DNA of 63,984 nt, the filler included, from Octopus bimaculoides (lineage: Eukaryota), in the NCBI RefSeq assembly GCF_001194135.2. It is 7 parts of 5 records of this genome, joined end to end, with 100 filler letters (N's around TTAATTAATTAA, not from the genome) between each part and the next. Parts side by side here need not be neighbours in the genome. Positions count along the whole stretch, not along the records: positions 1 to 29,653 come from NC_068983.1; 6 more parts are not named here. One strand, given 5' to 3'. The translations under genes were made by a program, and so were the position numbers. Position 1 is the stretch's first letter, and each line of letters starts with the position of its first letter. Shown here piece after piece: positions 1-29,653 of the stretch. The notes below the pieces were generated by a model, which searched no databases, had not been told where the DNA came from, and was given only the letters and a program-made list of their open reading frames with translations.

Positions 1-1351
1 TATATATATATATATATATGCATATATATATATATATTGGCTAAACTGGCAATATGACCATCCCCAAGTACAACAACATATATATATATATACACATATA
101 TATACATACAGAGATGAGAGAGAGAGAGAGGGGGGTGGAGCGCATATAAAGTTACATAGCCATTCTCGCATCCTCACTACCGTTTACACACTATTTAAGG
201 TTAATCAGCTGTTACGTCACAGATTTCAGCGGAATTCGCCTGTTTGTTTAGGCCTTCTTGAGAAATTGTTTACACAATTATCAGATGAGTTTATTAGCTC
301 CTGCCTTACACACGCGATTAAGTAGTTAACGGCTGATTCTCGTGAAGACTGTTTATTTTGTCTCCCAACAGCGGGAGCTGGGAGACGGTCGATCAAGTGT
401 AAACAAGTGATGTAGTTATATCTAAAATAGTATATATACTATTGTTAGTTTTTGATGTTACAACCTATTCAGTATTTACTTCCGTTCTTCAAATATACGT
501 CTTTACATATTGATTTCGTTTGACTTGGAATGAAGCCAGTCGTTTTAGCTTTCGTTATCGCATCTGTAGCCCAGATTAACCTTGACTGAGCACACCTATG
601 TCCAAAAGGTGCACTAGTCATGGGTTTTCTGCCCTTTTAGCAGCGTCTATGACTTCATTATTATCCTGTGTATTATTCCTTGTTTAAGGCGGTGGTATTT
701 GCTTTTTGAGAGATTTGACTAATATTTCTAGGAAGAAGACACACAACATAAAGAAACTTTGTTTAGAATATAATCGCATATTTCCCCTATTTTTTAAAAA
801 AGAGCGTACTTTTGATTCTTCGGAGCCAACATGCACTTCACCGTGATCAGTAACTGACTCTCCACAAAGCCCAAATGTAACCCACAATAGCCCACGGCTC
901 GCATATCTGTGACTGTTAATTCTGCATTCAAAAATATAGACTGAAGCCCAAAATCTATTATTCACCAGGTTGTCATATGCGCTTTTGCCAACGCACTACA
1001 AGCATTTGTTTACAAATGTGCTCTTTATTCTTCCTGTCGCCTTTATAGAAGCCATTACGGCTTTTAACTCACCTGAATTGGCACGCTGTCAAACCAACAC
1101 ACCTGCCCTACCTTCTCACGGCATTCTCACTGTTTATACTGATCCTTTGTCCTAGATTCTGTATTAAACCTACATATACTTTACCCAGAGCTACAAGCTT
1201 CTAGACTTTTTTCGCCTATCTATTCTTCCATAGAGCTGCAAGCTTCTGGAATTCTCTGCAGATGACGACCAATATAGGTTCGAACTAAACACCAACTGCA
1301 TCGATTTCAAATGCCTGAGTGTGCTTACAAAAGTCAGTTGCACGTCTCCTC

Positions 1352-1373
1352 ATCGTCGCCATCATCATCGTCG

Positions 1374-1421
<48 letters not shown>

Positions 1422-1967
1422 CCACCACCACCACCACCACCACCACCACCACTATCATTCTTNNNNNNNNNNNNNNNNNNNNNNNNNNNNNNNNNNNNNN
1501 NNNNNNNNNNNNNNNNNNNNNNNNNNNNNNNNNNNNNNNNNNNNNNNNNNNNNNNNNNNNNNNNNNNNNNNNNNNNNNNNNNNNNNNNNNNNNNNNNNNN
1601 NNNNNNNNNNNNNNNNNNNNNNNNNNNNNNNNNNNNNNNNNNNNNNNNNNNNNNNNNNNNNNNNNNNNNNNNNNNNNNNNNNNNNNNNNNNNNNNNNNNN
1701 NNNNNNNNNNNNNNNNNNNNNNNNNNNNNNNNNNNNNNNNNNNNNNNNNNNNNNNNNNNNNNNNNNNNNNNNNNNNNNNNNNNNNNNNNNNNNNNNNNNN
1801 NNNNNNNNNNNNNNNNNNNNNNNNNNNNNNNNNNNNNNNNNNNNNNNNNNNNNNNNNNNNNNNNNNNNNNNNNNNNNNNNNNNNNNNNNNNNNNNNNNNN
1901 NNNNNNNNNNNNNNNNNNNNNNNNNNNNNNNNNNNNNNNNNNNNNNNNNNNNNNNNNNNNNNNNNNN

Positions 1968-2031
<64 letters not shown>
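1352..2031 (+). repeat. (CAT)n(CAC)n and (CT)n microsatellites flanking a gap
   Basis: Directly visible; source of the poly-His, poly-Ser and SL ORFs in the track. Confidence 0.95.
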
Positions 2032-2032
<1 letters not shown>

Positions 2033-2191
2033 TTAATAAATGACAAGGGGACAGGAATCATGTAATCAACTGTAAGTTAATGAAGTTAATTACGTGAATC
2101 TTGTTCCTTTGTCATTCATTAATAAATATATAATGCTCTGTACTCGCCTAATACTTGTACTCTAAAGCATATGTATCCTGGGTTCTAACAA

Positions 2192-2575
2192 TAGGCGCAG
2201 ACGTGGCTGTGTGGTAAAAAGTTTTTTCTCAACCAAATGGTTCCGGATTCAATCCCACTGCAAAGTACCTTGGTCAAATTTCTTCTACTATAGCCTCAGG
2301 CCGGTCAAAGCCTTGTGAGTGGACTTTGTAGACGGAAACTTAAAGAAGCTCGTCATGTGTGTGTGTGTGTGTGTGAGTGAGTGTGTGTATGTCTCACCAC
2401 CGATTGACAACCGGTGTTGGTGAGTTTACCTCCCTGTAACTTAGTGGTTCGGCAAAAGACACCGATAGAATAAGTACCAGGCTTTAAAAAGCAATAAGCA
2501 CTGGGTTGATTTGTTCGACTATAATTCCTCATCGCGGTACCCCAGCATGGCCGCAGTCTAATCACTGAAACAAGG
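2192..2575 (+). mobile_element. SINE family A (CORE-like body, internal microsatellite), near full length
   Basis: GTGGCTGTGTGGTAA head, ACCTTGGTCAA...CTATAGCCTC body, internal (TG)n and CAGCATGGCCGCAGTC...CTGAAACAAG tail, shared with about 8 other copies in the window. Confidence 0.85.
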
Positions 2576-3154
2576 TAATTTAGTTCTAAATAGCATTCTG
2601 TAAATCATACTTAACGCAGATATACTGTCGAAAGCCTGGAAACTGTAGTATTCACCTCGAGAAAGCATCTCGTATAGACGTATAGTGTTAAAAAAACATC
2701 AGCAACGGTGGTGGAATTGCTAAATACACATTTCTGCTTTTTTTGAGTCATTAGTAGCAAGCATCCACAAGCAACCACATGCTAAACTTCCACTGATATA
2801 GAAAATCATTAATTAACAAATCTTTTCTTATTTGTTGATTCCATTTCTAGTGTCTACAAGTATTTCAATATTAAATATTTTACATTTTTCTGATTATTTT
2901 TCTTTTCTACCATATCAGATTTCCTATTCATAATATTATAGCTGCATTCAATGGCTGAGTTCCAAGGATTATGTTGTCTTTAGATTTGATTGTGTGTGTG
3001 TGTGTATGTGTATGTGTGGGTGTGTATATCTATCTACATATCTATCTTTCTACATGCACATAATCATGCGCGCGCAGACACATACGTACACATACATGTA
3101 TGCATATAATATATACATACATACATATATACATACATGCATGCATGCATGCAT

Positions 3155-3273
<119 letters not shown>

Positions 3274-3274
3274 A

Positions 3275-3498
3275 AGGCGGCGAGCTGGCAGAAACGTTAG
3301 CACGCCGGGCGAAATGCTTAGCGGTATTTTGTCTGCCGCTACGTTTTGAGTTCAAATTCCGCCGAGGTCGACTTTGACTTTCATACTTTCGGAGTCGATT
3401 AAATAAGTACCAGTTACGCACTAGGATCGATATAATCCGTTTGTCTGTCCTTGTTTGTCCCCTTTGTGTGTAGCCCCTTGTTGGTAGTAAAGAAATAA
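3275..3498 (+). mobile_element. SINE family B, full length
   Basis: AGGCGGCGAGCTGGCAGAAACGTTAGCAC...GAGTTCAAATTCCGCCGAGGTCGACTTTG...GTCGATTAAATAAGTACCAG, with a B-box-like GTTCAAATTC. Confidence 0.8.
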
Positions 3499-5369
3499 CA
3501 CACACATATATATATATTCATTATAATGTATACTTTCCAAATAATTTCCTATAGGCGATCCGTGATATGTTTCCCTTCTGTATCTCATATTCCATCTCAA
3601 ATAATTCATTATATTCTCTAAGAAATGCATTATATTTTTACCATTTTTTCCCTCATATTCCACACAATGGAGACGTAGGGCTTGTTTCTATTCTGCGAAG
3701 GCCTGGACTTAAGTCGCAGACATTATTTAGGTCTGGTGTTCTTGTCCATGGCCATAACTCACCCACATCCATATAATCATCCATTTACCTAACTGAAAAA
3801 AAGTACAAAACAAAACAAAAGCTAGACATTGTGGTATAATCGTTCACATGGGCACCTTACAGGCGATTGAACAGTGGCATAGCTAGGGTGTGTACCATCA
3901 GGGCAGCCTTTAAGTTTTTTCTGTCTCTTTTTTCTTTTTCTTTTCTCTCCTTCAGGAATCTAACAGCAAGGGATGATATATACAACACTCCATAAAAGCC
4001 TCACCCGGGATGGACCGGTTCCTGCCAACCCCCACCTCTCACATTCCAGCTCCTCTATGTATTAGTTTTGTCATTATTGTAATGATAATATNNNNNNNNN
4101 NNNNNNNNNNNNNNNNNNNNNNNNNNNNNNNNNNNNNNNNNNNNNNNNNNNNNNNNNNNNNNNNNNNNNNNNNNNNNNNNNNNNNNNNNNNNNNNNNNNN
4201 NNNNNNNNNNNNNNNNNNNNNNNNNNNNNNNNNNNNNNNNNNNNNNNNNNNNNNNNNNNNNNNNNNNNNNNNNNNNNNNNNNNNNNNNNNNNNNNNNNNN
4301 NNNNNNNNNNNNNNNNNNNNNNNNNNNNNNNNNNNNNNNNNNNNNNNNNNNNNNNNNNNNNNNNNNNNNNNNNNNNNNNNNNNNNNNNNNNNNNNNNNNN
4401 NNNNNNNNNNNNNNNNNNNNNNNNNNNNNNNNNNNNNNNNNNNNNNNNNNNNNNNNNNNNNNNNNNNNNNNNNNNNNNNNNNNNNNNNNNNNNNNNNNNN
4501 NNNNNNNNNNNNNNNNNNNNNNNNNNNNNNNNNNNNNNNNNNNNNNNNNNNNNNNNNNNNNNNNNNNNNNNNNNNNNNNNNNNNNNNNNNNNNNNNNNNN
4601 NNNNNNNNNNNNNNNNNNNNNNNNNNNNNNNNNNNNNNNNNNNNNNNNNNNNNNNNNNNNNNNNNNNNNNNNNNNNNNNNNNNNNNNNNNNNNNNNNNNN
4701 NNNNNNNNNNNNNNNNNNNNNNNNNNNNNNNNNNNNNNNNNNNNNNNNNNNNNNNNNNNNNNNNNNNNNNNNNNNNNNNNNATGTATGCATGAATGTATG
4801 CATGAATGTATGCATGTATGTATGTATGTATATATATATATATATAAATTTTACAGACAACACCTTTTTGAGGAGTGTAAATCTCCGTATATAGTCATTG
4901 CTTTTTGAGTTTTCTTACATAAACGAACCCTCTCTTTTTTTCTCTCTTAATAGCCTTCTTCTATACGTTGAAAGAGATATGACTTAGACATTAACGGCTG
5001 CAGTTTTATTTTCATTATTTAGTTTGTATTTAAGCAGTAATTTTAACCTTCTGAGGTATTCATTTCCAAAAATGTTGCCCCATTTCCTTCTTTAACTTAG
5101 TCATCTCTATTATATATATGCGTACTTATAAGCTTTCTGTATCTACCTGTTTAATGGTTTTCTGACTTGGTAATTGTATCCTAGTACTTTACGAATTATT
5201 TCGTCTTTTTCTCATTCGTTCTTTGCCAAGAGGAATGTAGTTTTCTTTATACTGTATACATTTAATATCACACCCATCTTCTACTCTTCGTAGTACTAAT
5301 ACTAAAAGTATTATTCTATATGTCTCAAAAGACTAAAAGAAGTAAATATTGGTTTACTATCCTTTACAG

Positions 5370-14115: not shown

Positions 14116-14139
14116 TCCAGCACCTAAAAATACGGTATC

Positions 14140-14212
14140 AAGATCTATTGAGATTCGAACTCTGATTGCAAGATTTAGAGTCCAGAGTGCTAACCAATTA
14201 CGCCATAGAACC
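14140..14212 (-). pseudogene. tRNA-Gln-derived pseudogene with anticodon CTA
   Basis: GGTTCTATGGCGTAATTGGTTAGCACTCTGGACTCTAAATCTTGCAATCAGAGTTCGAATCTCAATAGATCTT aligns by eye along its length to metazoan tRNA-Gln(CTG). A and B boxes are present; acceptor, anticodon and T stems carry mismatches. Confidence 0.7.
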
Positions 14213-14417
14213 CATACACTAGATATTCGTTTTTTTCTTCTTCTTTCTATTCTTTTACTGGTTTAGTCTATGAACTATTGTCTTGCTAGGGTACCACCGT
14301 CAAGAGTTTCAAGTCGAGTATATTGATCATTAGTGTTATTTCCGCCTTGTACTTATTTCATCGATAACTATCGAATCGCTAAGTTATTTATGCTTATTTT
14401 ATCTTTTATTCCTTTAG

Positions 14418-14621
14418 CCCTGAAGTGCAAGCAATCTTTGATAAATACCAAAAGACGATGGTACGTCGATTGAACAAAGGAGATGCCATCAAATTGTTTT
14501 TGGACGAATTCGGTCTGAATGACGAACAAGCAGAAAGCATGTTTGAAATGTTCGACAGAGACCATAACGGCGAGTTGAGCTTATGGGAGTTCCACCAGTT
14601 CTATACTATGATCGGAAACCA
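14418..14621 (+). CDS. EF-hand calcium-binding protein, exon 2
   Basis: Acceptor cttttattcctttAG, donor GTAAGT, 204 nt, phase 2-2. Reads PEVQAIFDKYQKTMVRRLNKGDAIKLFLDEFGLNDEQAESMFEMFDRDHNGELSLWEFHQFYTMIGN and contains a canonical EF-hand loop DRDHNGELSLWE. Confidence 0.93.
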
Positions 14622-15231
14622 GTAAGTAAGACCATTTCCATTTGTTGCAACACTATTATTATCCTTGTTGTTATTGTCGTTGTTCTCGTTAAGAAGTTCA
14701 CTACGCAGTCATGAAGTCTCGATTTCAATTCCGCTGCGTGACATCTTGGGCAAGCATAATTTCTATAGCCGCGGGTCGATTCATATCTTATGTCTGAAAT
14801 TGATTAGATGGGAACTGTGTGGAATTAGGCAGAAACTATGTGGAAACTGGTCGGATGAATTGTACTCGTAAAATATAGACCTGACCTTGCTCACACTGTG
14901 TCAGGTTGACTACGTGACTACGTAATTTTGGGATACTCAGCCACTTAAATGCTAATTGTATAGGCGCGTGGTTTAGTAGTTAGAGTGTTGGACTCATGAT
15001 GGTAAGATTGTAAAAGCCAGTCGTGTATATATATATATATAAGTTTAGCTGAGTTAGAGGTTGAAAAAACCGTCTAAGGAAAAAAATATCCATTATACTA
15101 CCGGTATATTTCCCATGTTTAACCATGGGCATACATATGCAAGCATATTATGTTCATAAATTATAGGTAAAGACAAGGATAAGCGTGAGATTATCAGGAA
15201 TTAAATTTAAAGAAAGTAAGAAAACAGAGAC

Positions 15232-15661
15232 ATATTGAAGAACAACAATTAACTGACATCAATTATCATTTACTAATTCAATACAAATTGACTACATCCC
15301 ATCTAACAGCTGTTTCTGCTTCCAATGTTATATGGTATTGAGAGTGAAGAATAAATGAATAAAAAGAGACACACAAGCAATATGTTATGATTATAAACAT
15401 ATTCAGCCTTTCCTTTATCTTCTCTAGGCGCTTCTTTTTTCTTTTTCCTTTTTTTTATTTATTTATTCATTCATTCTTCACTCTGATGAAGCTCCATGTT
15501 TCAGATCGGTTTCATTACCAAATATGATGAATATTTTTTAGCATATCAACGGCAATACCATATAACATTGGAAGCAGAAACAGCTGTTAGATGAGATATA
15601 GTCTATTTGTATTGAATTAATAAATAATAATTGATGTAAGTCAATTGTTGTTCTTCAATAT
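15232..15661. mobile_element. Inverted pair of Penelope-like terminal repeats with a hammerhead-like core
   Basis: 15232-15340 is the reverse complement of 15553-15661 with a few mismatches; 15341-15360 pairs with about 15465-15484. The + copy contains CTGATGA...GAAACAGCTGTT. Confidence 0.65.
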
Positions 15662-16646
15662 TTCTCCATTTGCTGTCTTCATTATATATGTATATAAAAT
15701 GTATGTATGTGCGTCCGTGTGAGTGGGTGCGCGAGCGTGTGATTTTTAAAATCACTTTGAAACATATTTTTTGAATAATTCTATACGAAGTGCGTCAGCG
15801 ATTCTTTTACTGTCCATGTGACGTGCACCAGAAATGTTTTTACTTTCCTTGCAAAGTCCGCAGATAATGTTTACTTGATCGCCAATACTCTGTGAAATCA
15901 AAAAGACTAAGAACAAGTGGAATACAGACAACCTCATTTTCAAGATTTCCATCAATTTTGTTAGGCTTTGACAGCAAAGCCTACCAGTATCTTTTGCTAG
16001 AAGTGTTCTTCTCTGAAATCTCAAACTTCCATTACGTTTCCAACTTAATAAATCACTATTCGTTTGTTATCTTCAAGACTAAAGAAATATTTACTTCTCT
16101 TCTCTTCTCTTTAAAGTGAACTCTGAGAGTTTTCTTTTTTCATCCATGAAACAAGTTATGGCAGTTGCTTCTCATCGGAAGTGTATAACAGCTGTAAACG
16201 AAGGATATGGCTTGTTAGATTCATTAACACGCGAGAGTATTTATTCAAGCTATTTTTACTCTTCGTTCAACGCCTTTCGTGCCGTGAATAAGCAGAATTA
16301 TTATAGTGCCTTTCGGTTTTAGTTCTGGCTTTTTACGTTGTTTTGTAGAGTTGACTTTATTCTCGTCGCCCGATTTAACACCACCGTCAGGTCCTTGGAT
16401 GGGTGCCTTTAGCGGACTTCATTCTGTAACAAGCATTCGAAAAATATTCATTCCTATACAATCGTAAACGTATGGCAGTTATAAATCCTAAATGCTAAGT
16501 GTTATTCATGCATGTATATAGAAATAAGGAAATATTTGCTATTATGTAAGTGTATAAGAGTTCCAAATATTTGGTCATCGTTACATTAATAACAAATTGA
16601 TTTTAAAATACGTGGAAGAAAAACTGGTATTTTGTCTTAGTATCAG

Positions 16647-16685
<39 letters not shown>

Positions 16686-16686
<1 letters not shown>

Positions 16687-17051
16687 GTTTCAAATTTCGG
16701 CACAAGGCCAGCAGGATTGGGGGATTAAATCGACCCCACTTTTCTACTGGTACTTATTTTATCAATCCCGAAAGGATGGAAGGCAAAATCGACCTCGGCG
16801 GAATTTGAACTCAGAAGGTAAAACCGGAAGAGATACTGCTAAGCGTTAATAATAATAATAAAGGCACAAGGCTTGAAATTTTGTGGGAGGGGACCAGTTG
16901 ATTGCATCAACTCCAGTGTTTCATTGTTACTTAATTTATCGACCCCGAAAGGATGAAAGGCAAAGTCGACATCGTTGGAATTTGAACTCAAAACGTACAG
17001 ACAGACGAAATACCACTAAGCATTTTTCCCGGCGTTCTAGCGATTCTGCCA
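16686..17051 (-). mobile_element. Two head-to-tail SINE family B copies with (ATT)n tails
   Basis: Reverse complements at about 16686-16848 and 16862-17051, each abutting an (AAT)n run. Confidence 0.8.
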
Positions 17052-17707
17052 ATAGTAATACAAGAAGCCAACATAGACAATCAGTATTATTTTGTTACAT
17101 CTCGTTTTGGGTTTTGTTAAAGAGATTTTTGCTAGTGCCAGCAGACGAGCCAAATGAAAAGGTCACATTCTGCCGTACTTCACATTTGCAGAAAGTTTTT
17201 TTGCCATTCTTTACGTTCTTTGAGATAATAAAAGAAAACTGCTTGATGCATAGGCTTGAGTTTATGTGTGCTGACATACCTAATGATAATACAACTTCCT
17301 TATTTACTCATAGTTCTATAAACAATAGGTACGTTTCATGAAAAACCTCGATATAGTCACTCGTCTCTCTATTGAGGAGATACACAGCTGCGTCTGCTGT
17401 AAAAAAAGAGGAGAGATGGCGGTGATGAAATGTCAAAGTATACTCTCGAGGTACAAAAAGATGAAGTTTCATACTGCTACGACTTGCAAGCGAGTTCTGT
17501 GAAGAATGAAGCAACATAGAACTTGAGTCCTGAATGATTTATTATACTACTGCTTTGCTCCTGGTCACTCCGCTGTCCACCGTCCTTGTGGCCTGCTTCT
17601 CGAAAAAGCTTGCCCATGCCTGATCTAGACTATTTGTTCTCAAAATTTCTATATAAAATAAGAGACTTCATAGATCGTAGATAAATCCTTATAACCTTGC
17701 AGTGAAT

Positions 17708-17798
<91 letters not shown>

Positions 17799-18469
17799 AG
17801 AGAGAGTGGGGTCCTATCGCTTTTTCCAGACATAAAAATAGATTTAGTTCTGCATCTCAAGTTAGTGAAGTCCTTGTTAATCATACAATTCTCTCATTGC
17901 TTACAGCTGTGAACTGCGTGTACTGAGAGCAGCCAAAGAACTCGCTTTCTTATAAGCCGAGTAACACTGACGCTGATGAGTTGATAGCATCCTGTTAGTT
18001 CTCTTAACATTAATTAGGTACCGTTGTATTAAATAACTCATTACCGTAACGTTTCATTCGTTGGCCGAGCTTATTTGGGATCCAGATGTGCGATATAGCG
18101 GAATGAACTTAAACTGAATTATACTTTACCAACCATAACGTACCTATTAGCATTCTTTAAACAAGGATATCTTTTCACTATTTAATGCAAATAAAGTTTT
18201 CGCACTTCGTACTATAGCTCGTCGTACTGTAGTTTGTCGGTTAATCTAGCTACGAATAATTTCTATTTCAATTTTTTTCTACGATAAGCTTTTGACTATC
18301 TTTCGTCACTACATTAAATACATCCATTAATTATCTAGTTGTTACATTTCAAATACATCACAGATCTCAACCCTCAAGCTAGAGAAATAAAATGGTAATC
18401 TTGAAATGATTACTCGATAGTGTGCGTAGCTCGGAGATCAAGAAGTCTCTACAGGTCGAGCCGCTACTT

Positions 18470-18645
18470 CTCCACATTGAAAAGCCACAGCTCCGATACT
18501 ACTGACATGTGATTAGAATGTCTCAGGAAAGAATCGCAAGATGGACTCTTCACGCAGAGCTAGCCAGCAGGAGATCTATGGGCAAGCCAAGAACGAGATG
18601 GTTGGATAAAGTCCAGTCTCTGTTGGTCGTGCTTGGGAATCCAGG
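18470..18645 (+). mobile_element. Non-LTR retrotransposon (RTE-like) ORF2 C-terminal fragment
   Basis: HVIRMSQERIARWTLHAELASRRSMGKPRTRWLDKV matches the GHVxRM...R..GRPR.RW motif. Confidence 0.65.
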
Positions 18646-18666
18646 TGGAAATTATAATGATGATCG

Positions 18667-18734
18667 CTACTATAGCCTCGGGCCAACCAAAGCCTTGTGA
18701 GTGGATTTGGTAGACGGAACCTGAAAAAAGCCTG

Positions 18735-18767
<33 letters not shown>

Positions 18768-19017
18768 NNNNNNNNNNNNNNNNNNNNNNNNNNNNNNNNN
18801 NNNNNNATATATGTTTGTGTGTCTGTGTTTGTTCCCCCACCATCGCTTGACAACCGATGCTGGTGTGTTTATGTCCTCGAAGCTTATAGGGTCGGCAAAA
18901 AAGAGACCGATGGAATAAGTACTAGGCTTACAAAGAATAAGTCCTGGGGTTGATTTGTTCGACTAAAGGCGGTGCTCCAGCATGGCCACAGTCAAATGAC
19001 TGAAACTAATAAAAGAA
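18667..19017 (+). mobile_element. SINE family A, 5'-truncated
   Basis: CTATAGCCTCGGGCCAACCAAAGCCTTGTGAG..., an internal (TA)n containing a gap, and the complete tail. Confidence 0.85.
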
Positions 19018-20919
19018 ATGAAAGAATATGCTCGCCTCGTCCATTGTAACAGTGAGACTGGCAGAATCGTTAAAGCATCGGACAAAATACTTTGCAGTAT
19101 TTTGTTGCAGTCCTTTACATTCCTAGTTCAAACCCCGCTGAAATTGACTACGACTTTCACCCTTTCAGGTGTCGGCCAAATAGCGTACCAATCAACTACT
19201 GCATCAATTTTCTCGAGTATATCCCTTTCCAAAAGATATGGCCTTGTGCCAGTGTTAGAGATTATATCTGTGAGACATTGACAGTTTCTTCAAAGTTCTC
19301 ACGCACATTTTGTGTAATGTAACATAAATGCAATCTGATTTATCGAAGTTAAGATCTTAGTTATCGAGATTTTCCCTGATAACGTCGACTTTTCTGTCAA
19401 CAATTTTATCTTGGAACCATGTTTAGATATGATGAATAAGAGATATCACTCGTTGAGTTTTATCGATAACATTCGCTCAGTTGATATCTCTTGATATGAT
19501 CCGAAGTTAATGGCAACTCTTTGATAAGACAACCGCCAACAGTGTCGAGAATTTCTGAGCTACGATAATGTCATGGGAAAATGTAGAGGATGTGACTTGC
19601 GTACAGTTTATTACTTTAAGAAGGACAATTGTGTCATAAGGAAATATATAGAAATTAAGAAGGAGAACGTAGATAACTTACGTTCTCGATTATTATTAGA
19701 TGTATTCGTAAAATAAGAAAGAATGTTAATTCCTTAATACACACAAGCGCTAGTCATGTTTTGTAACTAGTTCTTAGTTCTTTAATATACACAGGAGCCA
19801 GGCATAAAGTTACGGTATTTGAAAGACTGACAGATATAGTGTAATTTGTCAGAAAGTTATTTTTGTACAGCGTTCAACAACACTATCGTCTTTTTTTTTT
19901 TTTACCTTTCGGTTTGCGTTTAAAATTCCAAAACCACATATTTCTGTCAAACGCTAAACGCCTTTGAACTATTTCTGGCGGACAAATTTATTTTTGTTTT
20001 CATTTCTCTGACAAATTCTAGACAACTTCGATAGCTTCTACAAATTTTGAGGGACCACCAAACTTGACTTTAGAATATAAATAGAACACTTGTCAGACAT
20101 TCCTCACTTTAGCTCAAGAGAAACGAACATGATTTTTGCATGCTGACAAGCTATTTAAAATAGACGTTACTATTTAAAGTAGGGATGCGAGATGTTTGTA
20201 AAACGAAACCAACAAAAAGGACATACACGAAAATTATTGCGAGGGGATATAACTCTTGAACAAGTTATAGCCAAGGGAGGCAACTTTCAGAGCATACTTG
20301 GATATTAAACACCTTATAATGGCAGATAAAAGGCCAAACTTTACTCAAATAAAATTCCACCGAGATAAACTCTACCTTTCATCTCTCCGTAGTCGAGTTT
20401 TAGAGTAGATTTAATTGTCTAACCTCTCCTCTTTGAAAAAGTTTCCGGCCTTGTATCTACATTAGAAACAGTCATTTCGTTCTGTCACTTTATATTATGA
20501 GATCCTAAAAAACTTATAGAATAGGTTTTCCATTCGTCCACAGTTAAGAAGAACGTCCATAAGTTCTACAAATGTTACCTGAAATCAGATAACATTTTTC
20601 TTTTTTTCAAAGAAGTTAATCAGAAGAGGTTAAGAGGAGTATCTATGATTATGCAGGGCTTTCCCAATTGGTTGGGAGAAGGGAGAAGGAAAAAACTATG
20701 CCTCGTGGGTTATTCACAAACTAGAGAAATTGGCTAAATGTTTGCGAAAGAGTGGACGTTACTACAGATATTCAAGGTCCGGATGAATGTATTTAACCGG
20801 GTTTGATGAACTTCAGCATGTCGTGGTCACTTATGGATAGAATGAAACTTGTTAATCGAATGAAATATCAACAGCAGTTTTTATAAGTCGATTCAAAGAA
20901 GTGCCTCGTCCAATACCAT

Positions 20920-21092
20920 TGGCAGCTTTGCAGACGTCCAGTAGTACCCTTCTGGCAGCTTTGCAAACGTCCAGTACACTTCTGGCAGCTTTGCAAACGT
21001 CCAGTACCCTTCTGGCAGCTTTGCAAACGTCCAGTAGTACCCTTCTGGCAGCTTTGCAAACGTCCAGTACCTTTCTGGCAGCTTTGCAAACG
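20920..21092 (+). repeat. Minisatellite of 30/33-bp units (5.5 copies)
   Basis: TGGCAGCTTTGCAAACGTCCAG(TAG)TACCCTTC in unit order 33, 30, 30, 33, 30, partial. Confidence 0.95.
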
Positions 21093-21459
21093 AAAGGTGC
21101 ATCCAATGAATTCCTCGAAATAGTAGGTCAAACCACACCTTACCATCTTAAATAGAGAGGGCTGCACATGCAGTGCCCAAGAAAAGTTGGAATAGTCATA
21201 GTCGGAATTCCCGCCTTTGTTCGTAGGTCTGCTAGTCAGAGCCATCCTGCTCGGCAAAAACACAGCAACAACAACAAAAACAAAATGGCGCTGATGTAAT
21301 TTGTTTCTAAAGTTCGAAACCATATAAATACCGGATCCGCGTATTTAAACTATTTACTAAGACTTTGATGTGTCTAATGATTATCTCCCTTCCTTTTTAT
21401 TTATCAAAATCATTAATGCTCTCCCCTGCCTCACTACGTCTCTTTCTTTCTTTGTTTAG

Positions 21460-21559
21460 TGCTCAAGACATGTTAACTCTGTTTGAAAAACTTGAAAAGG
21501 ATGAGAAAGGACATATCCAAATTGATGCAGCCTGGGAAGCTATGAGAACAATGAACACT
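21460..21559 (+). CDS. EF-hand calcium-binding protein, exon 3 (cut off by assembly gap)
   Basis: Long polypyrimidine acceptor tctttctttctttgtttAG. The split codon CA|T (His) continues the frame: AQDMLTLFEKLEKDEKGHIQIDAAWEAMRTMNT, with a degenerate EF loop EKDEKGHIQIDA. Runs into Ns at 21560. Confidence 0.88.
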
Positions 21560-22458
21560 NNNNNNNNNNNNNNNNNNNNNNNNNNNNNNNNNNNNNNNNN
21601 NNNNNNNNNNNNNNNNNNNNNNNNNNNNNNNNNNNNNNNNNNNNNNNNNNNNNNNNNNNNNNNNNNNNNNNNNNNNNNNNNNNNNNNNNNNNNNNNNNNN
21701 NNNNNNNNNNNNNNNNNNNNNNNNNNNNNNNNNNNNNNNNNNNNNNNNNNNNNNNNNNNNNNNNNNNNNNNNNNNNNNNNNNNNNNNNNNNNNNNNNNNN
21801 NNNNNNNNNNNNNNNNNNNNNNNNNNNNNNNNNNNNNNNNNNNNNNNNNNNNNNNNNNNNNNNNNNNNNNNNNNNNNNNNNNNNNNNNNNNNNNNNNNNN
21901 NNNNNNNNNNNNNNNNNNNNNNNNNNNNNNNNNNNNNNNNNNNNNNNNNNNNNNNNNNNNNNNNNNNNNNNNNNNNNNNNNNNNNNNNNNNNNNNNNNNN
22001 NNNNNNNNNNNNNNNNNNNNNNNNNNNNNNNNNNNNNNNNNNNNNNNNNNNNNNNNNNNNNNNNNNNNNNNNNNNNNNNNNNNNNNNNNNNNNNNNNNNN
22101 NNNNNNNNNNNNNNNNNNNNNNNNNNNNNNNNNNNNNNNNNNNNNNNNNNNNNNNNNNNNNNNNNNNNNNNNNNNNNNNNNNNNNNNNNNNNNNNNNNNN
22201 NNNNNNNNNNNNNNNNNNNNNNNNNNNNNNNNNNNNNNNNNNNNNNNNNNNNNNNNNNNNNNNNNNNNNNNNNNNNNNNNNNNNNNNNNNNNNNNNNNNN
22301 NNNNNNNNNNNNNNNNNNNNNNNNNNNNNNNNNNNNNNNNNNNNNNNNNNNNNNNNNNNNNNNNNNNNNNNNNNNNNNNNNNNNNNNNNNNNNNNNNNNN
22401 NNNNNNNNNNNNNNNNNNNNNNNNNNNNNNNNNNNNNNNNNNNNNNNNNNNNNNNNNN

Positions 22459-22493
<35 letters not shown>

Positions 22494-23039
22494 ATGTGTG
22501 TGTGTGTATACTTGTGTGTGTTTACAAAACCCTCCACAAAGACTTTGAGAGACATTCAGCAAACTGGCTGAAGACTCTATTGTAATAATTTTCTTCTCGA
22601 ATATTTACTATTAATATATCCTACATTTATATATATATACGTAATTAAAAAAAAAAACCTCATTGTATTGTTGTTTATGATTAAATAACATTTTTATACT
22701 GAATATGAGTTGTTTTCTTTTAGTTTGTTTATTTATTTATTCATTTATTTATTGTATTCGCCTAATATTTTTGTTTTGTATTGACTTGTATGATGGCAGG
22801 ATAGTTTAGTTTGGGTTGTTTTTTTAAAAATTAATATGACTAAACACACTATTCAGTTAAACTTTGAGTGCTACCTGGTTCTTAAATAACTTTACTATTT
22901 GCCTACCTTGACCATCTCTAGTTTCCTTGGATCCAGTTGTTTCACTTGCAGACTTGTTGACCATGAGGGATTTCATGAGGACAGTTTATCCTCAAAGATT
23001 ATTACATACGGTAAGCTGTACTTACTTAAGGAACATATA

Positions 23040-23550
23040 GTGCTAGGCCAATCATTGGAAAAACATTCAAGCGAAGTCGTTGCCAGTGCCGCTGGACTGG
23101 CTCCTGTGCAGGTGGCACGTGAAAAACACCATTTGAGCATGACTGTTGCCATTACAGCTTGTTGCTAACATTTTGACCAGATTCATCCTTTACTCCCTGA
23201 GTGAATTTTCCCTACAATAGCTGACCAGCAGATACTGAAAAAGAATATCCAATGACTGGCACCCGTGCATTATAATGGTGTTGATTGCCAGTGCCATACA
23301 ATTGGCACCCATGAATTGTAGTCATGGTTGTCGCCAGTGTCATGTAAATGGCACCCATGCCGGTGGCACGTAAAAAAACGCCTATTACACTCCTGAAGTG
23401 GTTGGTGTTATGAAGGGCATCCAACCATAGAAACCATGCCAAATCAAACTGGAACCTGGCGCAGCTTTCCAGCTTATCTGTTCCAGTCAAACTGTTTAAC
23501 CCATACCAGCACAGAGAGTAGACATTAAGTGATGATAATGATGATGATGA
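23040..23550 (+). mobile_element. RTE-associated 3' UTR remnant with (GAT)n tail
   Basis: GGCACGT-AAAA motifs and AAGGGCATCCA, ending ...AACCCATACCAGCA...GACATTAAGTGATGATAATGATGATGAT, similar to the tails at 13660 and 25684. Confidence 0.55.
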
Positions 23551-24305
23551 TCTTCAGATTTTCAGGCTAAGCATAAGCTTCACTCATCACCCAAATCTCA
23601 GGCCTTGTGCCTATAGTAGAAAGGATTATTATCAAGAAAGAAACTCAAAAAACTTTTTTTTTTCCATAGATACAATATTTATTTAAACTTTCTTGACACT
23701 ACAGGGAATAAATGATAAAAACACCACCAGTTCTGACAAGTCTCTTTTTTTTTTTTAAGAATAATGACATTAGAATTTATTATTCGACCATCTAAGATTA
23801 TTTATGTCTTTTAGTTCTGCAATAACAAATGTTATTTGACTCATATTATTACTTTTTCAAATTTTAAATGAAATTATCTAAATTAAAACATTTGAATAGT
23901 TGAAGCCAAGGTGACAGTCTGCAAAGGTGACCCTTTTGTTCCGTTTCTTTGTAATTACCATTATCCTGATACTGTCTGAATTGCAGAAAATATAACATGA
24001 TTTAAATGATAAAAATTATATTGCTTTTAAAACAAAAGAAATTTAATGAAGAAAGAAAAATACTGACTGAAATTTATAAATTTGTTGCTCTATGTACTTT
24101 AGTGCTCATTTTGAAAAGTTAAATAAATCGAAGAAACAGGTTTATTCTTCAGTGATTCATTCAAGGTAGGTACTTACACCCTGTGTTTCTATTCTCTACC
24201 TTCTCTTTAGGGTCTCTTTTATCTTCTATTTGTCTTCTAGCTTCTTTTTACTCCTGTTTATTACAGTATATTTTACTGCCTACAGTTAAATTTATTCCTC
24301 AAAAA

Positions 24306-24577
24306 TTACATATGTAAAAACAGATACCTGACCAATGACAAAATATCTGGAACAATAATTACTGAAGCTAGAACTGTAAACAAGACAACAGCCAGTACAC
24401 CAATAGCTTGAGATGAAGGTCTGTCATCCTTGGCACTTATTTTCTTGGCAATATACCTTGATGTTTCATTTTGTTTTACAGATAGTTCCTTACGGGTCTC
24501 CTGCATTCGTTTCTCAAAATGTTCAGGTGTTTCCACATAACAGGCACAGGGACATAAAGTTTCATTTTCAGTGGAAT
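24306..24577 (-). CDS. Terminal exon: CPCAC motif, juxtamembrane KKISAKDDRPSS, transmembrane helix, short tail
   Basis: Acceptor tatattctatttacAG. The split codon A|AT (Asn) joins the Thr-rich exon in frame: STENETLCPCACYVETPEHFEKRMQETRKELSVKQNETSRYIAKKISAKDDRPSSQAIGVLAVVLFTVLASVIIVPDILSLVRYLFLHM-stop. Confidence 0.9.
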
Positions 24578-24648
24578 CTGTAAATAGAATATAGATTTCT
24601 GAAACCAGATCAGAGTTACAAATTTTGAGGATGTGGTGTGGTCTAGAT

Positions 24649-25088
24649 CAGTGGTTCTTAACCTTTTTTTGTAGTCCCTACATATTTGAGCAGTTGTTAT
24701 GTCTAGTGTCCATCTAAGTGGTGAGCGAGGTTTCATGTCTAAACTGACTTAGCATGGATGATAATTTATAACTTTTACTCTAAAAATGGATTGTATAAGC
24801 TTTTAACAGAGAAATGATAAAAAATAAGAGACGAAAGTTGTAAATATACTTCATGCATTGCAAATTAATGACTTCCCCGTGCCTGATGAGATTTAATTTT
24901 ATTTTAATAACCATTTTAATAAGCATTACTTGTTTTATCATATATAATATAATTACTACTATAGGTAAAATTTTGCTTTGTAATTATGTTACCTAACTGC
25001 TTCACTCATTACTCCCTAAAGCCTAACGCCTTTTCAATATGCCCAGTGCTTCCTTGGGAATGGTAACTATGCATGTTGAGAACCTCTG
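24649..25088. mobile_element. hAT (Charlie-type) MITE
   Basis: TIRs CAGTGGTTCTTAAC and GTTGAGAACCTCTG. The 8-bp flanks GTCTAGAT and GTGTAAAA match at 5/8 and fit an NTNTANAN target. Confidence 0.75.
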
Positions 25089-25576
25089 GTGTAAAACATT
25101 ACATCAACATCCAGTATTTCATTTCTGCTTTATATTAGCAGCTTTGTAAGGATCAATGGTAAAGCTGGCACCAGCTGCATTTGAACTCAGAACATACACG
25201 AATGAGATGAATTATAGCAAGTTTTTTTTTCATCAGCAGCTCTACTGATTATGCAAATCCACAACCCTCAGTATAGGTATGTCTGCACAACTGTATGGTT
25301 TGATAGGCAATTCCTGTGTGTAACATCTTCAGCAAATAAATTTCTTCTACCATCTTCTGAAGTTGAACTATATGAAAGCATCTTGTATATAAGCAATAAT
25401 TTATCGGCATTTCCTATAAATGTGTGTGTGTGCTTGTACACACATATAGCTAGATATTTCTCTCTCTCTCTCTTTCTTTCTCTCTGTGAGTGTGTGTATG
25501 TATGCGTGTATGTAAGTATGTATGTGTACACATAAATATATGTGTAGTTTGTATGTGTATGTATATATATATACAC

Positions 25577-25619
<43 letters not shown>

Positions 25620-25683
25620 ATTATATATAGAGAGAGAGATTATATATATATGGGAAAAAAAGTCAAGGTAGAAAATGCTAAAA

Positions 25684-26810
25684 TCATCATCATCATTTAA
25701 TGTCTGCTTCCCATGCTAGCATGGGTTGGACAATTTGACTGAAGACTGGTAAACCAGATGGCTGCATGGAAGCCAGTCAAGGCGGCGCTGGCATCAGCCA
25801 TGTTCGGTGTTTTTTATGTGCCAACATAAACGGGGATCACAACTACAATTTCCATTTGATTTTGATTTTGATGTACTTGACTCAGTAGGTCTCCTCAAGC
25901 ACGGCATGTCACCCTACGACCCAAGGTACTTTGAGTGAGCTGGTTATGGGACACTGGTGTAGGTTACAGCTGTGAACTCACTTTATTTGCCGGGTCTTCT
26001 TCATCACAGCATATCTTGGTCTTTTGTCATTGCCTCTGTGAGGCCCAACGTTCGAAGGTCATGCTTCACCACTGCATCCCATGTCTTCCTGGGTCTCCCT
26101 CTACCCCGGATTCCTTCCACTGTTTGGGAGTGGCACTTCTTCACACAGATCTCCTCATCCATCCGTAGTACATAACTATACCAACGCAAACGTCCCTCTT
26201 GCATGCTACATTCGATGTGCACACTGACATTACACATCCAGCAGATCATACTAGCTGCATTTCTTTTGAGCCTACACATATCTTCAGCAGTCACGGCCTG
26301 TGTTTCACTGCCATGAAGCATGGCAGTTTGCACACATGCATTGTACAATCAATCTACCTTTCACTCTGAGCGAGAGGCCTTTGTCAACAGTAGGAGTAGA
26401 AGCTTTCTGAACTTTGCCCAGGCTATTCTTATTCTAGTGGTAACACTCTCAGAGCATCCACCCCTACTACAGACTTGGTCACCTATGTAGCGGAAGCTAT
26501 CAACTACTTCTAGTTTCTCCCCCTGGCATGTGATGGAATCTGTTTTCTGAGCATCCGTGGTGTTTATTGCCCCAGTGCATCTGCCACACATGAAAGCTAT
26601 CTTCTCAGTTAATTTCCCTTTGATGTTGCTGCATCTCTTATGTATCCATAGCTTACACTGGGTACATTTTACAGAGTTTCAACCTACACCTTTTCTACAG
26701 ACTGAGCAGAGCCACCTACCTGAAGGGGTGTATGATGTGTTCGCCTTCCTACTTACTAGAACTTTGGTCTTTGCAACATTGACTCTAGGGCCCTTATACT
26801 CATTTTATCC
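25684..26810 (-). mobile_element. 5'-truncated RTE-clade LINE with frameshifted ORF2 C-terminus
   Basis: GEKLEVVDSFRYIGDQV...TRIRIAWAKFRKLL, YNACVQTAMLHGSET, RLRWYSYVLRM...RGRGRPRKTW, plus 3' UTR and (GAT)n tail. Confidence 0.92.
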
Positions 26811-26921
26811 TTTTTCATATTTTATTTGTATCGACCGTGCGGAAGGAGAGGTGACAAGAATGGCTCCTTTAGTACATCACAACAAGGTCGATACAAATAA
26901 AATATGAAAAGGGATAAATGC

Positions 26922-27775
26922 TGTATTTAGAAGGAAAAGAGAGACACAACCGGTAGAGTGTTTAAGAGAAGATTTTATTTATAGGTTAACGTGTGTGTCT
27001 GTGTGTGCAACGTACAAACATAATAATAGACAGGCCATCATGTATACAAAGTGTGTATGTACAAACATGGATGTATGTGTGTGCAATAAGTACAGAGCAT
27101 GAAGAGAGTATGACGTTAGAAGAAAGTCCAGACACAAGGATGATAAATACCAGTTCGTAGTCAAGGTACACAGTAGTTGAAGTGCTGTATCAAGAAGTTG
27201 AGGCTGCAATGCAGAGCCGGGGAGAGGCACATGTCGTATAAGAAGTTGTGACTACGATGACGAGCCGGTCTCTTGTTACAGAAGGGTCGCAGGTTGTACT
27301 TGTTGTTAACCATGGTGAAGTAATTCACAAACTGTGGATATAGAACCTGTGCGAGCATAGCGGGTTGGTGTGTACGTAGCAAGAAATTGATGTTGTTAAG
27401 AAGATGATGGTGGCGACAGAGATGGAGGTCCTGAATGCTGCTGGACGAAGTGTTGCTGAGTCTCCATGTGGCTGCTGTTGTGTCGTCACTGGAACTGGCA
27501 GTGTGCTCTGTGGTCAGTGGCTAAACCTCAGAAGGTCTGTAGCCGAAAGACCTTGAGATGGTGTGAAGCTAGCATCTTATAGTGGGCTGTCAGCTGACTG
27601 GAAGTTTAGAAAAGACTGTCTCATGTGACCTCATCTGAAGGCTGTGATTGGTTGGGTTGCATCTTGGCGCGCAATAGGGCAAGAAACAACTTGAGCCAAT
27701 AGCAAACAATCAGAGTAGTGGACACAACAGGGTCCAAAGTGCAGCCGAAGGCTAGCTGTTATCTACTATGTCCGT
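26922..27775 (-). mobile_element. Solo-LTR-like segment
   Basis: On the minus strand: CCAAT at 27651-27647, TATAAG at about 27581-27576, AATAAA at 26979-26974, ending ...TACA. It is richer in GC than its flanks. No target-site duplication was found. Confidence 0.45.
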
Positions 27776-27788
27776 ATTTATGTATATA

Positions 27789-28001
27789 CAGAGTGTCCAT
27801 AAGGTCTGGGTACATGGAGTAAATAAAACCATAATATAAACAATTAAATATAAGAAATAATAATTTCTTAAAGTATGTGTTAATCCCCATGTGGGTACAT
27901 GGAGTAAATAAAATCATAACATAAACAATTAAATATAAGAAATAATAATGTTTTTAAAGTATGTGTTAATCCCCATGTACCCAGACTTTGTGGACACCCT
28001 G
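27789..28001. mobile_element. Tc1/mariner-type MITE with internal tandem duplication
   Basis: TA|CAGAGTGTCCATAAGGTCTGGGTACATGG ... CCATGTACCCAGACTTTGTGGACACCCTG|TA; an internal segment of about 85 bp is present twice. Confidence 0.85.
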
Positions 28002-28114
28002 TATAACAGAGAGAGAGAGGAGAATTTCCCTAAAGGCGTTCGCTACACCAGCATGGAAACAGACACTAAATGATTTGTCTAATATTATTTTATTTTTATA
28101 GTTTAGTAATATTA

Positions 28115-28750
28115 GGAGGCGCAATGGCCCAGTGGTTAGGGCAGCGGACTCGCGATCATAGGATCGCGGTTTTGATTCCCAGACCGGGCGTTGTGAGTGT
28201 TTATTGAGCGAAAACACCTAAAGCTCCACGAGGCTCCGGCAGGGGATGGTGGCGAACCCTGCTGTACTCTTTCACCACAACTTTCTCTCACTCTTTCTTC
28301 CTGTTTCTGTTGTGCCTGTATTTCAAAGGGTCAGCCTTGTCACACTGTGTCACTCTGAATATCCCCGAGAACTACGTTAAGGGTACACGTGTCTGTGGAG
28401 TGCTCAGCCACTTGCNNNNNNNNNNTTGTGAGTGTTTATTGAGCGAAAACACCTAAAGCTCCACGAGGCTCCGGCAGGGGATGGTGGCGAACCCTGCTGT
28501 ACTCTTTCACCACAACTTTCTCTCACTCTTTCTTCCTGTTTCTGTTGTGCCTGTATTTCAAAGGGTCAGCCTTGTCACACTGTGTCACTCTGAATATCCC
28601 CGAGAACTACGTTAAGGGTACACGTGTCTGTGGAGTGCTCAGCCACTTGCACGTTAGTTTCATGAGCAGGCTGTTCCGTTGATCGGATCAACTGGAACCC
28701 TCGATGTCGTAAGCGACAGAATGCCAACAACAACAACAACAACAACAACA
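28115..28750 (+). mobile_element. tRNA-headed SINE family C, body type 1; middle duplicated across a gap
   Basis: A box TGGCCCAGTGG, B-box-like GTTTTGATTCC, GAGCGAAAACACCTAAAGCTCC body, GATCGGATCAACTGGAACCC tail, then (AAC)n. Confidence 0.85.
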
Positions 28751-28784
28751 GTAATATTATCTTAAATACTGTCAAGTTACTTAC

Positions 28785-29168
28785 TCTTTTCTGCTGGAAT
28801 TGATGATCCATTCACCATTGCTGATGCCATGTCTGCCTCCAATGTTGTTATTTTTGGCGATGTAGCTTGTGTTTCTGTTCCTGTTGATGCTGTACTTGTC
28901 GTTTCTGTTTTGATTGTTGTTTCTATTGTCGGTGTTGTTACAGTAGTATCAATAGTTGTTGTTGTTGGTCTTCTTTTAGTAGTAGTGGTAGTAGTAGTAG
29001 TAGTAGCAGCAGTAGTAGAAGTAGTAGCAGTAGTAGTAGTAGCAGTAGTAGAAGTAGTAGCAGTAGTAGTAGAAGTAGTATCTGTTGTATTCGTTGGTTC
29101 TAGTGTGGATGTTATTAATGATTGTGTTGTGTTTATTGGTGATATGGTTGTATCTCTATATTCAGAAC
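28785..29168 (-). CDS. Thr-rich mucin-like stalk exon of a membrane glycoprotein
   Basis: Acceptor atttttctttttaaaacAG, donor GTAAGT, 384 nt, phase 1-1. Reads GSEYRDTTISPINTT...TTTTTKRRPTTTT...SSIPAEK, with NTT and NGS sequons. Confidence 0.85.
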
Positions 29169-29299
29169 CTGTTTTAAAAAGAAAAATATTGATTGCCAGT
29201 GTTTTATACTGATTTCCTTGTTTAATATCATCATCACCATCCTTTGGCATCTATTTACCATTCTAAATTTAAGAGATAAGGAATTATGTACATTATTTA

Positions 29300-29653
29300 C
29301 GAGCTTACGCATGTCCTCAGCAGCCACAGCCCATGTTTCACTGCCATGTAGCATGGTTGTTCGTACTGTATGATGCATGCGTACGAACAACCATGCTACA
29401 TGGCAGTGAAACATGGGCTGTGGCTGCTGAGGACATGCGTAAGCTCGCAAGGAATGAAGCCAGTATGCTCCGTTGGATGTGTAATGTCAATGTGAATACC
29501 CGTCAGAGTGTAGGTATCTTGAGAGAAAGGCTGAACATTAGAAGCGTCAGTTGTGGCGTGCAAGAGAGACGATTGCGCTGGTATGGACATGTGGTGAGAA
29601 TGGAGGAGGATAGCTGCGTGAAAAAGTGCCACACCCTAACAGTTGAGGGAGCC
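29300..29653 (+). mobile_element. RTE LINE fragment with an inverted 5' segment
   Basis: LYDACVRTTMLHGSETWAV...RRLRWYGHVVRMEEDSCVKKC; 29300-29366 is the exact reverse complement of 29381-29447. Confidence 0.9.

Follow-up and report, generated by a model that had tools for sequence, protein, structure and literature searches.

Stalked type I receptors of the PSGL-1/CD8/CD28 type form interchain disulfides through membrane-proximal cysteines. Molluscs lack adaptive immunity, and their lectin, Sushi, EGF, and discoidin protein families are greatly expanded; to our knowledge, little has been established about the way in which their recognition proteins are attached to cells or transmit signals. 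Here, a 63,984-nucleotide stretch of joined parts of the Octopus bimaculoides genome (assembly GCF_001194135.2; hereafter the window), of which positions 1 to 29,653 derive from NC_068983.1, was analyzed, with a focus on a conserved C-terminal module encoded at positions 24306–29168 on the minus strand. This region is the last two exons of O. bimaculoides LOC106884377. Among mollusc membrane proteins, the polymorphic single-pass "TM1" clusters GRC/PTC1 and PTC2 of Biomphalaria glabrata are mollusc-restricted, have no known domains, occur as clusters of paralogues, and have a proposed role in recognition (PMC4361660, PMC7494358, PMC11426442). In these traits they resemble the proteins described here. 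In the GRC TM1 proteins, the membrane helix lies >50 residues from both ends and fibronectin III domains are present (PMC4361660), whereas the helix of the octopus protein ends 13 residues from the C-terminus, and on this ground the GRC proteins were set apart from the family.

The C-terminal module and its molluscan family

The initial annotation of this region had listed a Thr-rich stalk, a CPCAC cluster, a transmembrane helix followed by Asp, a tail of about 12 residues, and six N-glycosylation sequons, and all of these elements were found on the minus strand. Its description of the product as a mucin-stalk membrane protein was right in kind, except that only the 3′ end of the gene falls within the window.

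The single 89-residue peptide of the terminal exon was searched with phmmer against 1.84 billion cluster representatives, of which 433 carried the module at E ≤ 1e-3; homologues therefore exist outside this locus. The family became visible only in this exhaustive HMMER scan. A word-indexed homologue search returned nothing with the single peptide and only 18 proteins with a profile of 84 sequences. Figures for position, partner domains, and taxa were derived from the best 150 of the 433 matches, and in these the module match ended a median of 9 residues from the protein C-terminus. All 25 named clusters sampled were molluscan and represented three classes, the cephalopods, gastropods, and bivalves. 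They included Octopus bimaculoides, O. vulgaris, Argonauta, Physella, Aplysia, Lottia, Haliotis, and Gigantopelta, as well as Magallana/Crassostrea, Saccostrea, Mytilus, Mizuhopecten, Argopecten, Tegillarca, and Solemya. Many unnamed members were short contigs of public read assemblies present in several samples, which suggests that they are transcripts. The initial annotation had described the module as recurring in many uncharacterized molluscan proteins, and it does recur in hundreds, mostly named "uncharacterized" and bearing it at the C-terminus.

The N-terminal partners of the module, which had been said to vary, were catalogued with Pfam in the 150 members. The most frequent were Lectin_C (9), Sushi (7), IgGFc_binding (5), and HRM (4), followed by F5/8 type C (3), Ephrin_rec_like (3), several EGF types (3), and WSC, Methyltransf_FA, and PAN (2 each); Ig, Kringle, and SUEL lectin were found once each. 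Over the 60 residues preceding the module, the median Ser plus Thr content was 35%, and the usual layout was a signal peptide, one or more binding domains, an S/T-rich stalk, and the module, here also called the cassette. Clear signal peptides and disulfide-rich ectodomains were present in members. The cell-surface display system proposed at the outset fits these signal peptides, ectodomains, and stalks, together with the sequon excess beside the membrane helix described below.

The module lies within one terminal exon in Octopus and at two Saccostrea loci. A single terminal exon as the universal unit of shuffling was rejected, because the module of a scallop (Argopecten) gene is divided over two exons, with ...TLS before the break and TIRKK after it. 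Five gene models contained two complete modules each along with repeated ectodomains. Gene prediction has probably fused tandem paralogues in these cases, which would imply local gene clusters in bivalves and gastropods.

Consistent with the earlier impression that the domain had no name, no Pfam-A (2025) family was found on the window peptides at E ≤ 10, and none covered the module in the 150 members. Pfam matches to Orf78/ac78 in octopus paralogues were rejected as noise, scoring 13.9 bits against a cut-off of 29.4. A profile search of the PDB with the module gave nothing significant, and a literature search found no description of it. Database names carried by members, such as "integumentary mucin C.1-like," "TFIID subunit 12-like," "A-agglutinin anchorage subunit-like," and "fibulin-5-like," reflect composition or partner domains. 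Taken at the level of sequence, these results indicate that the module is a real, large, and apparently mollusc-specific domain family without a Pfam name.

A consensus was built from 162 module instances, whose column numbers are used below for the family and differ from the residue numbers of the octopus module peptide. The family signature reads C-x-C-x-C, a helix, [TL]S-x3-R-K-K-x-S-A-x-D-x-R-P-S-x3-G, 17 residues, and D. The pattern given in the initial annotation, CxCxC...L.V.K...S...RK..SA.D.RPS..IG-TM-D (TM, transmembrane helix), matches this independently derived consensus. At the N-terminal end of the module, C-x-C was near-invariant (C4 and C6) and extended to C-x-C-x-C in 59% of modules. 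Exactly three cysteines were counted in 91 of 142 modules (64%), and some members contained no other cysteine able to pair. The cluster is followed by a sequon-bearing turn and then by a helix with hydrophobic columns 17, 21, 24, 28, and 30.

The most conserved stretch had the consensus [TL]-S-x3-R-K-K-[IT]-S-A-x-D-x-R-P-S-[SA]-x2-[IV]-G. Near-invariant positions across the module were L28, S36, R40, S44, D47, R49, S51, G56, and D74; D47 was retained in 157/161 modules, R49 in 161/161, G56 in 160/160, and the Asp after the membrane helix (D74) in 156/157. Seventeen residues separated this Gly from the Asp in 115 of 139 modules, usually with a Pro before the Asp. The tail beyond the Asp was amphipathic, with a median length of approximately 20 residues family-wide and 12 in octopus. 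An acidic dileucine signal, [DE]xxxL[LI], at D-I-L-S-L-V was dismissed as a family feature, since only 44/139 modules have Leu at +4 and the motif lies directly against the membrane.

Within the membrane helix and tail, conservation was periodic at 3.6–3.67 residues (permutation p 0.002–0.005), and the membrane helix has one conserved face, formed by G56, G59, L63, I70, and D74. The heptad fit in the extracellular helix was good at columns 17, 21, 24, and 28 and poorer at later ones. One continuous heptad register running from the extracellular helix through the membrane helix was unsupported by the permutation tests, which found significant periodicity only in the membrane helix and tail.

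The octopus protein carries this signature. The family hidden Markov model matched the terminal exon at E = 1.4e-32, and the Cys cluster agrees with the family pattern C-x-C(-x-C) 35–50 residues before the membrane helix. The motif KKISAKDDRPS precedes the membrane helix, and the longer segment LSVKQNETSRYIAKKISAKDDRPSSQAIG fits L-x-V-x-K-x2-[TL]-S-x3-R-K-K-x-S-A-x-D-x-R-P-S-x3-G with R40 → A as the sole change. From G59 to D77 in module-peptide numbering, there are 17 intervening residues. An AlphaFold2 monomer model, built on a shallow alignment of 19 sequences, predicted a helix at residues 17–47, a break at K-D-D-R-P, and a second helix at 53–88, with a predicted local distance difference test score of ~90 in the membrane helix. 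The amphipathic helix predicted initially was thus reproduced as a helix in the model, but its amphipathicity was statistically marginal.

The side of the membrane on which the module begins was addressed through its glycosylation sequons. In the 55 residues before S-A-x-D-x-R, 223 sequons were counted across the family, compared with 86.6 ± 8.3 in composition-preserving shuffles, a 2.6-fold excess that falls mainly at three positions of the alignment. This excess, along with the signal peptides and disulfide-rich ectodomains seen in members, supports a location of the juxtamembrane helix outside the cell and a type I topology, as read from sequence. R-K-K-x-S resembles a basophilic kinase site despite its predicted extracellular position.

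Proposed anchoring and assembly roles of the cassette, and alternatives

The reading that we favor, with confidence slightly better than even, is that the product of LOC106884377 is a type I glycoprotein with an O-glycosylated Thr-rich stalk and an anchor-and-assembly cassette of ~85 residues drawn from a mollusc-wide family. The cassette would anchor the ectodomain in the plasma membrane and would also assemble it, with the odd-numbered Cys cluster making interchain disulfides atop the N-glycosylated helix and that helix acting as a spacer or bundle. The invariant D-x-R-P could form a hinge or collar at the membrane surface that joins the outer helix to a membrane helix of fixed length, whose conserved face (G, G, L, I, D) may pack against a second copy or a partner helix. 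Recognition domains would in this way be displayed multivalently on stalks. Oligomerization, helix packing, and biological role are what we infer from these features.

Several points weigh against this reading. The structural model on which it draws is of a monomer only, with a predicted template modeling score (pTM) of 0.32. The apparent restriction to molluscs rests on names sampled among the best 150 of 433 matches. At the octopus locus itself, the current NCBI annotation is split, and the joined type I protein is therefore probable rather than proven there. The basic outer flank reverses the positive-inside rule, which the proposed model leaves unexplained: when module columns 40–54 were compared with columns 74–88, the charge was +2.4 before the membrane helix and +1.1 after it, and the value before exceeded that after in 103/144 modules. 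Finally, the hydrophobic periodicity of the extracellular helix was only marginal (permutation p 0.045–0.064, columns 14–46), and its conservation was not limited to one face. Such a pattern suits a recognition site no less than a coiled coil, and it keeps alive the two alternatives of shedding and partner docking.

The first of these is regulated release, which we regard as unlikely. The initial annotation had suggested that the basic KK/R-SA-D-R segment may serve in shedding or oligomerization. R-K-K-x-S-A-x-D-x-R-P-S-S would be the site of a dedicated protease, either a sheddase or one making a rhomboid-type cut aided by the G-x-x-G at the outer end of the membrane helix, and the ectodomains would be shed as soluble lectins or opsonins. 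No other part of the module is as conserved as this segment, and its conservation extends over all helix faces, as would be the case for a site that an enzyme recognizes. ADAM-type sheddases, against this reading, do not depend on a conserved sequence. The segment is dibasic in 109 of 159 modules, but just 4 of the 159 have the canonical furin site R-x-[KR]-R and the window protein lacks it, on which ground a furin or proprotein-convertase substrate was rejected; an S1P-like pattern was found in 36/159. Release is also favored by the small residues (S-S or S-A) and the invariant glycines G56 and G59 where the membrane helix begins on its outer side, and by the current annotation of the locus, which includes a short, possibly secreted product. 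Cleavage would nevertheless leave the invariant Asp, the fixed 17-residue spacing, and the conserved face of the membrane helix unaccounted for.

In the second alternative, members, being nearly tailless, would signal through a common, putative membrane partner that docks on the conserved helix face and the invariant Asp. By analogy, and with the charges reversed, this would resemble the pairing of vertebrate immunoreceptors with DAP12 or FcR-gamma. We consider such coupling rather improbable. Hydrophobic residues lie on both sides of the Asp, but the Asp itself sits at the predicted membrane boundary and not in mid-membrane. Conservation on only one face of the membrane helix favors docking, although self-association would account for these features equally well. 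Also in favor, the ectodomains belong to types characteristic of pattern recognition and the short tails contain no recognizable signaling motif; no partner is known, and no search for one was made.

A broader and more speculative form of this idea, to which we give still less credence, is that the cassette is a phylum-specific universal receptor chassis, in which one conserved juxtamembrane and transmembrane unit would serve hundreds of mollusc recognition ectodomains and the collar, the helix face, and the boundary Asp would dock one common signaling adaptor or one intramembrane or juxtamembrane protease. If this were true, molluscs would have an undescribed modular immunoreceptor system similar in principle to DAP12- and CD3-coupled receptors, and the polymorphic single-pass gene clusters governing resistance of snails to schistosomes might be part of it. 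Apart from that possibility, the cassette offers a handle for cataloguing membrane-bound recognition receptors now listed as "uncharacterized" or misnamed. It also supplies defined invariant residues to mutate and a bait for a common partner or protease, and the annotation of the octopus locus, which current models split in two, is improved.

Gene models and surroundings of the octopus locus

The exon structure of the region was read from its splice signals (Table 1). The acceptor of the penultimate exon, exon A, consists of a polypyrimidine tract and AG at 29169–29170, and its donor is GTAAGT from 28784; the acceptor sequence of the terminal exon is TTTACAG. Exon A ends in phase 1 and is completed by two leading bases of the terminal exon into an AAT (Asn) codon, so the two join in frame as ...IPAEK-N-STENETLCPCACYVETPEHFEKRMQETRKELSVKQNETSRYIAKKISAKDDRPSSQAIGVLAVVLFTVLASVIIVPDILSLVRYLFLHM-stop. 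Of the 128 residues encoded by exon A, 56 are Thr, and a period-3/33 ACT/ACA/GCT repeat makes up part of its coding sequence. The two-exon peptide contains exactly six N-x-S/T sequons (NTT, NTT, NGS, NST, NET, and NET), of which NST is made by the splice junction. No second copy of the module was found within the window.

Table 1. Features of the 3′ part of LOC106884377 in window coordinates.
Feature	Position	Strand	Remarks
Penultimate exon (exon A)	28785..29168	-	Thr-rich mucin-like stalk with three N-glycosylation sequons; residues 199–326 of the 412-aa model
Intron	24578..28784	-	Phase 1, 4.2 kb, repeat-filled; contains an assembly gap
Terminal exon	24306..24577	-	Entire conserved C-terminal module and stop codon (24306–24308)
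Cys cluster	24540..24554	-	C-P-C-A-C
Predicted extracellular juxtamembrane helix	24435..24527	-	Module residues 17–47, PEHFEKRMQETRKELSVKQNETSRYIAKKIS-A; one NET sequon; AlphaFold2 model
Stretch most conserved in the family	24399..24464	-	T-S-x3-(R)-K-K-I-S-A-x-D-x-R-P-S-S-x2-I-G
Membrane-spanning helix	24348..24404	-	IGVLAVVLFTVLASVIIVP
Invariant Asp	24345..24347	-	Cytoplasmic end of the membrane helix
Short hydrophobic/amphipathic tail	24309..24344	-	ILSLVRYLFLHM, 12 residues
False assembly gap (28416–28425) with flanking identical copies	28191..28650	.	Intronic

Two generations of gene models cover the locus. The peptide of the terminal exon matches, with 100% identity, the C-terminal end of XP_052822666.1 (O. 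bimaculoides, 245 aa), which is labeled "integumentary mucin C.1-like" on compositional similarity only. This protein starts at an ATG within an open reading frame (ORF) that runs upstream of the 29169–29170 acceptor, and no signal peptide is present in it. In XP_014791218.1 (412 aa), an older model of this locus, ...EIFGTG is joined to SEYRD... exactly at that acceptor; this model includes a signal peptide, MQKKILFLLMVAACGSIYTG, and a ~175-residue N-terminal domain, whose coding sequences lie outside the piece. The upstream exons were found on the same strand of the fetched chromosome locus, past the edge of the piece, and the last of them ends ACTG|GTAACA, a phase-1 donor at 4774–4775 of that locus that matches the phase of exon A. 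The current NCBI annotation instead has two products, one of 205 aa that is possibly secreted and reads through the ACTG|GTAACA donor, and the 245-aa protein. This split, between 29169–29250 and the upstream exons (1–4808 of the fetched locus), could represent alternative secreted and membrane isoforms or a mis-annotation of one probable gene. The N-terminal domain of the 412-aa model had no match in Pfam or the PDB, and Pfam scans of the window peptide and the full 412-aa model found no SEA, VWD, trefoil, or cystine-knot domain.

Taken as annotated, the 245-aa product would be a tail-anchored protein with a cytosolic Thr-rich N-terminus, which we consider very unlikely. Its ATG does lie in an ORF extending upstream of the acceptor, and the N-terminal flank of the membrane helix is basic. 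Against this stand the strong acceptor at 29169–29170 and an upstream donor of matching phase, the signal peptide of the older model, and the family-wide sequon enrichment and disulfide-rich ectodomains. Moreover, the extra 27 residues of the 245-aa product, MPKDGDD...FLFKTG, are conserved in no match, since matches begin only from residue 157. The joined 412-aa type I protein is, on sequence comparison, the model that appears to agree with the architecture of the module family.

A glycosylphosphatidylinositol-anchor signal, in which S-A would be the attachment site and the hydrophobic C-terminus would be removed, is hardly credible despite the small residues S44-A45 lying ~10 residues before a 19-residue hydrophobic stretch near the C-terminus, because the residue at +2 relative to the putative site (K, P, Y, or Q) is not small, a charged tail with a median of 20 residues follows the hydrophobic stretch, and a discarded signal would not retain invariant G56 and D74, fixed spacing, and a conserved helical face.

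The assembly gap lies inside the 4.2-kb intron, ~360 nt from the exon A donor, and it recurs in the chromosome-level record. The 225 nt to either side of it form a perfect direct duplicate (28191–28415 = 28426–28650). Because the two contig ends thus overlap, the gap is a scaffolding artefact; it is intronic and cannot disturb the coding frame. A tRNA-derived element resembling a short interspersed element was observed in the intron at 28110–28700, with the gap between two copies of the element body. Retroelement-like ORF fragments (...MLHGSETWAV...RLRWYGHVVRM...) were also found in the intron at 26004–26348 (minus strand) and upstream of exon A at 29291–29653, and had no significant Pfam match. 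The upstream fragment contains a near-perfect inverted repeat of ~80 nt, paired around 29369/29370.

Elsewhere in the window, a tRNA-like sequence at 14139–14213 (minus strand) scored 31.4 bits with the Rfam tRNA model and was assigned the anticodon CTA ("Pyl") by ARAGORN; it is probably a tRNA-derived repeat or pseudogene and not a suppressor tRNA gene. A neighboring gene at approximately 14306–21559 (plus strand), corresponding to 17692–24945 (minus strand) of the fetched chromosome locus, gave weak EF-hand matches in Pfam. Its ORF fragment at 21365–21559 reads ...FEKLEKDEKGHIQIDAAWEAMRTMNT and is interrupted by a gap.

Comparison with known systems

The best profile match of the module in the PDB was to archaeal type IV pilin N-termini (class III signal peptide; 8gi2_A and 9myg_A), which was not significant (E = 0.017) and spanned module columns 40–79. 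The pilin N-terminus (DEERAVSPVIGV...) has a weak local likeness to the module, D/E-x-R-x-x-S-x-x-I-G followed by a hydrophobic helix. A relationship was rejected in favor of chance or convergence, given this E value and the fact that the pilin motif is N-terminal and archaeal, whereas the module is C-terminal and molluscan. The likeness to Xenopus integumentary mucin C.1 is one of Thr-rich, low-complexity composition; Pfam detected no mucin-type folded domain in the window peptide.

A Cys cluster beside a heptad-like helix is generally known from the coiled coils of COMP, thrombospondin, matrilin, and tenascin, and it is this likeness that underlies the proposal of oligomerization for the cassette. 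Those proteins are secreted into the matrix and have no fusion to a membrane helix, however, and the heptad periodicity of the mollusc helix is only marginal. In overall design, many members resemble the group XIV C-type lectins (thrombomodulin, CD93, CD248, and CLEC14A) and the selectins, with a C-type lectin domain with or without Sushi or EGF domains, a mucin-like stalk, a membrane helix, and a short tail. As far as is generally known, the vertebrate proteins nevertheless share no conserved juxtamembrane and transmembrane cassette with the molluscan one.

These lectin-type proteins and the PSGL-1/CD8/CD28-type receptors are the closest analogues in function. The latter show, as general knowledge, the same order of elements: a signal peptide, a binding domain, an O-glycosylated S/T-rich stalk, membrane-proximal cysteines, and one membrane helix with a short tail behind it. 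The sequences are not known to be related, and the mollusc cassette differs in its triple Cys motif ~50 residues from the membrane, its conserved helix, its invariant D-x-R-P...G-17-D signature, and its occurrence with more than a dozen ectodomain types. The cassette is thus of a known kind, the stalk-and-anchor region of type I receptors, with a mechanism that we infer; what sets it apart is the strict juxtamembrane and transmembrane signature and the breadth of partners with which it is combined.

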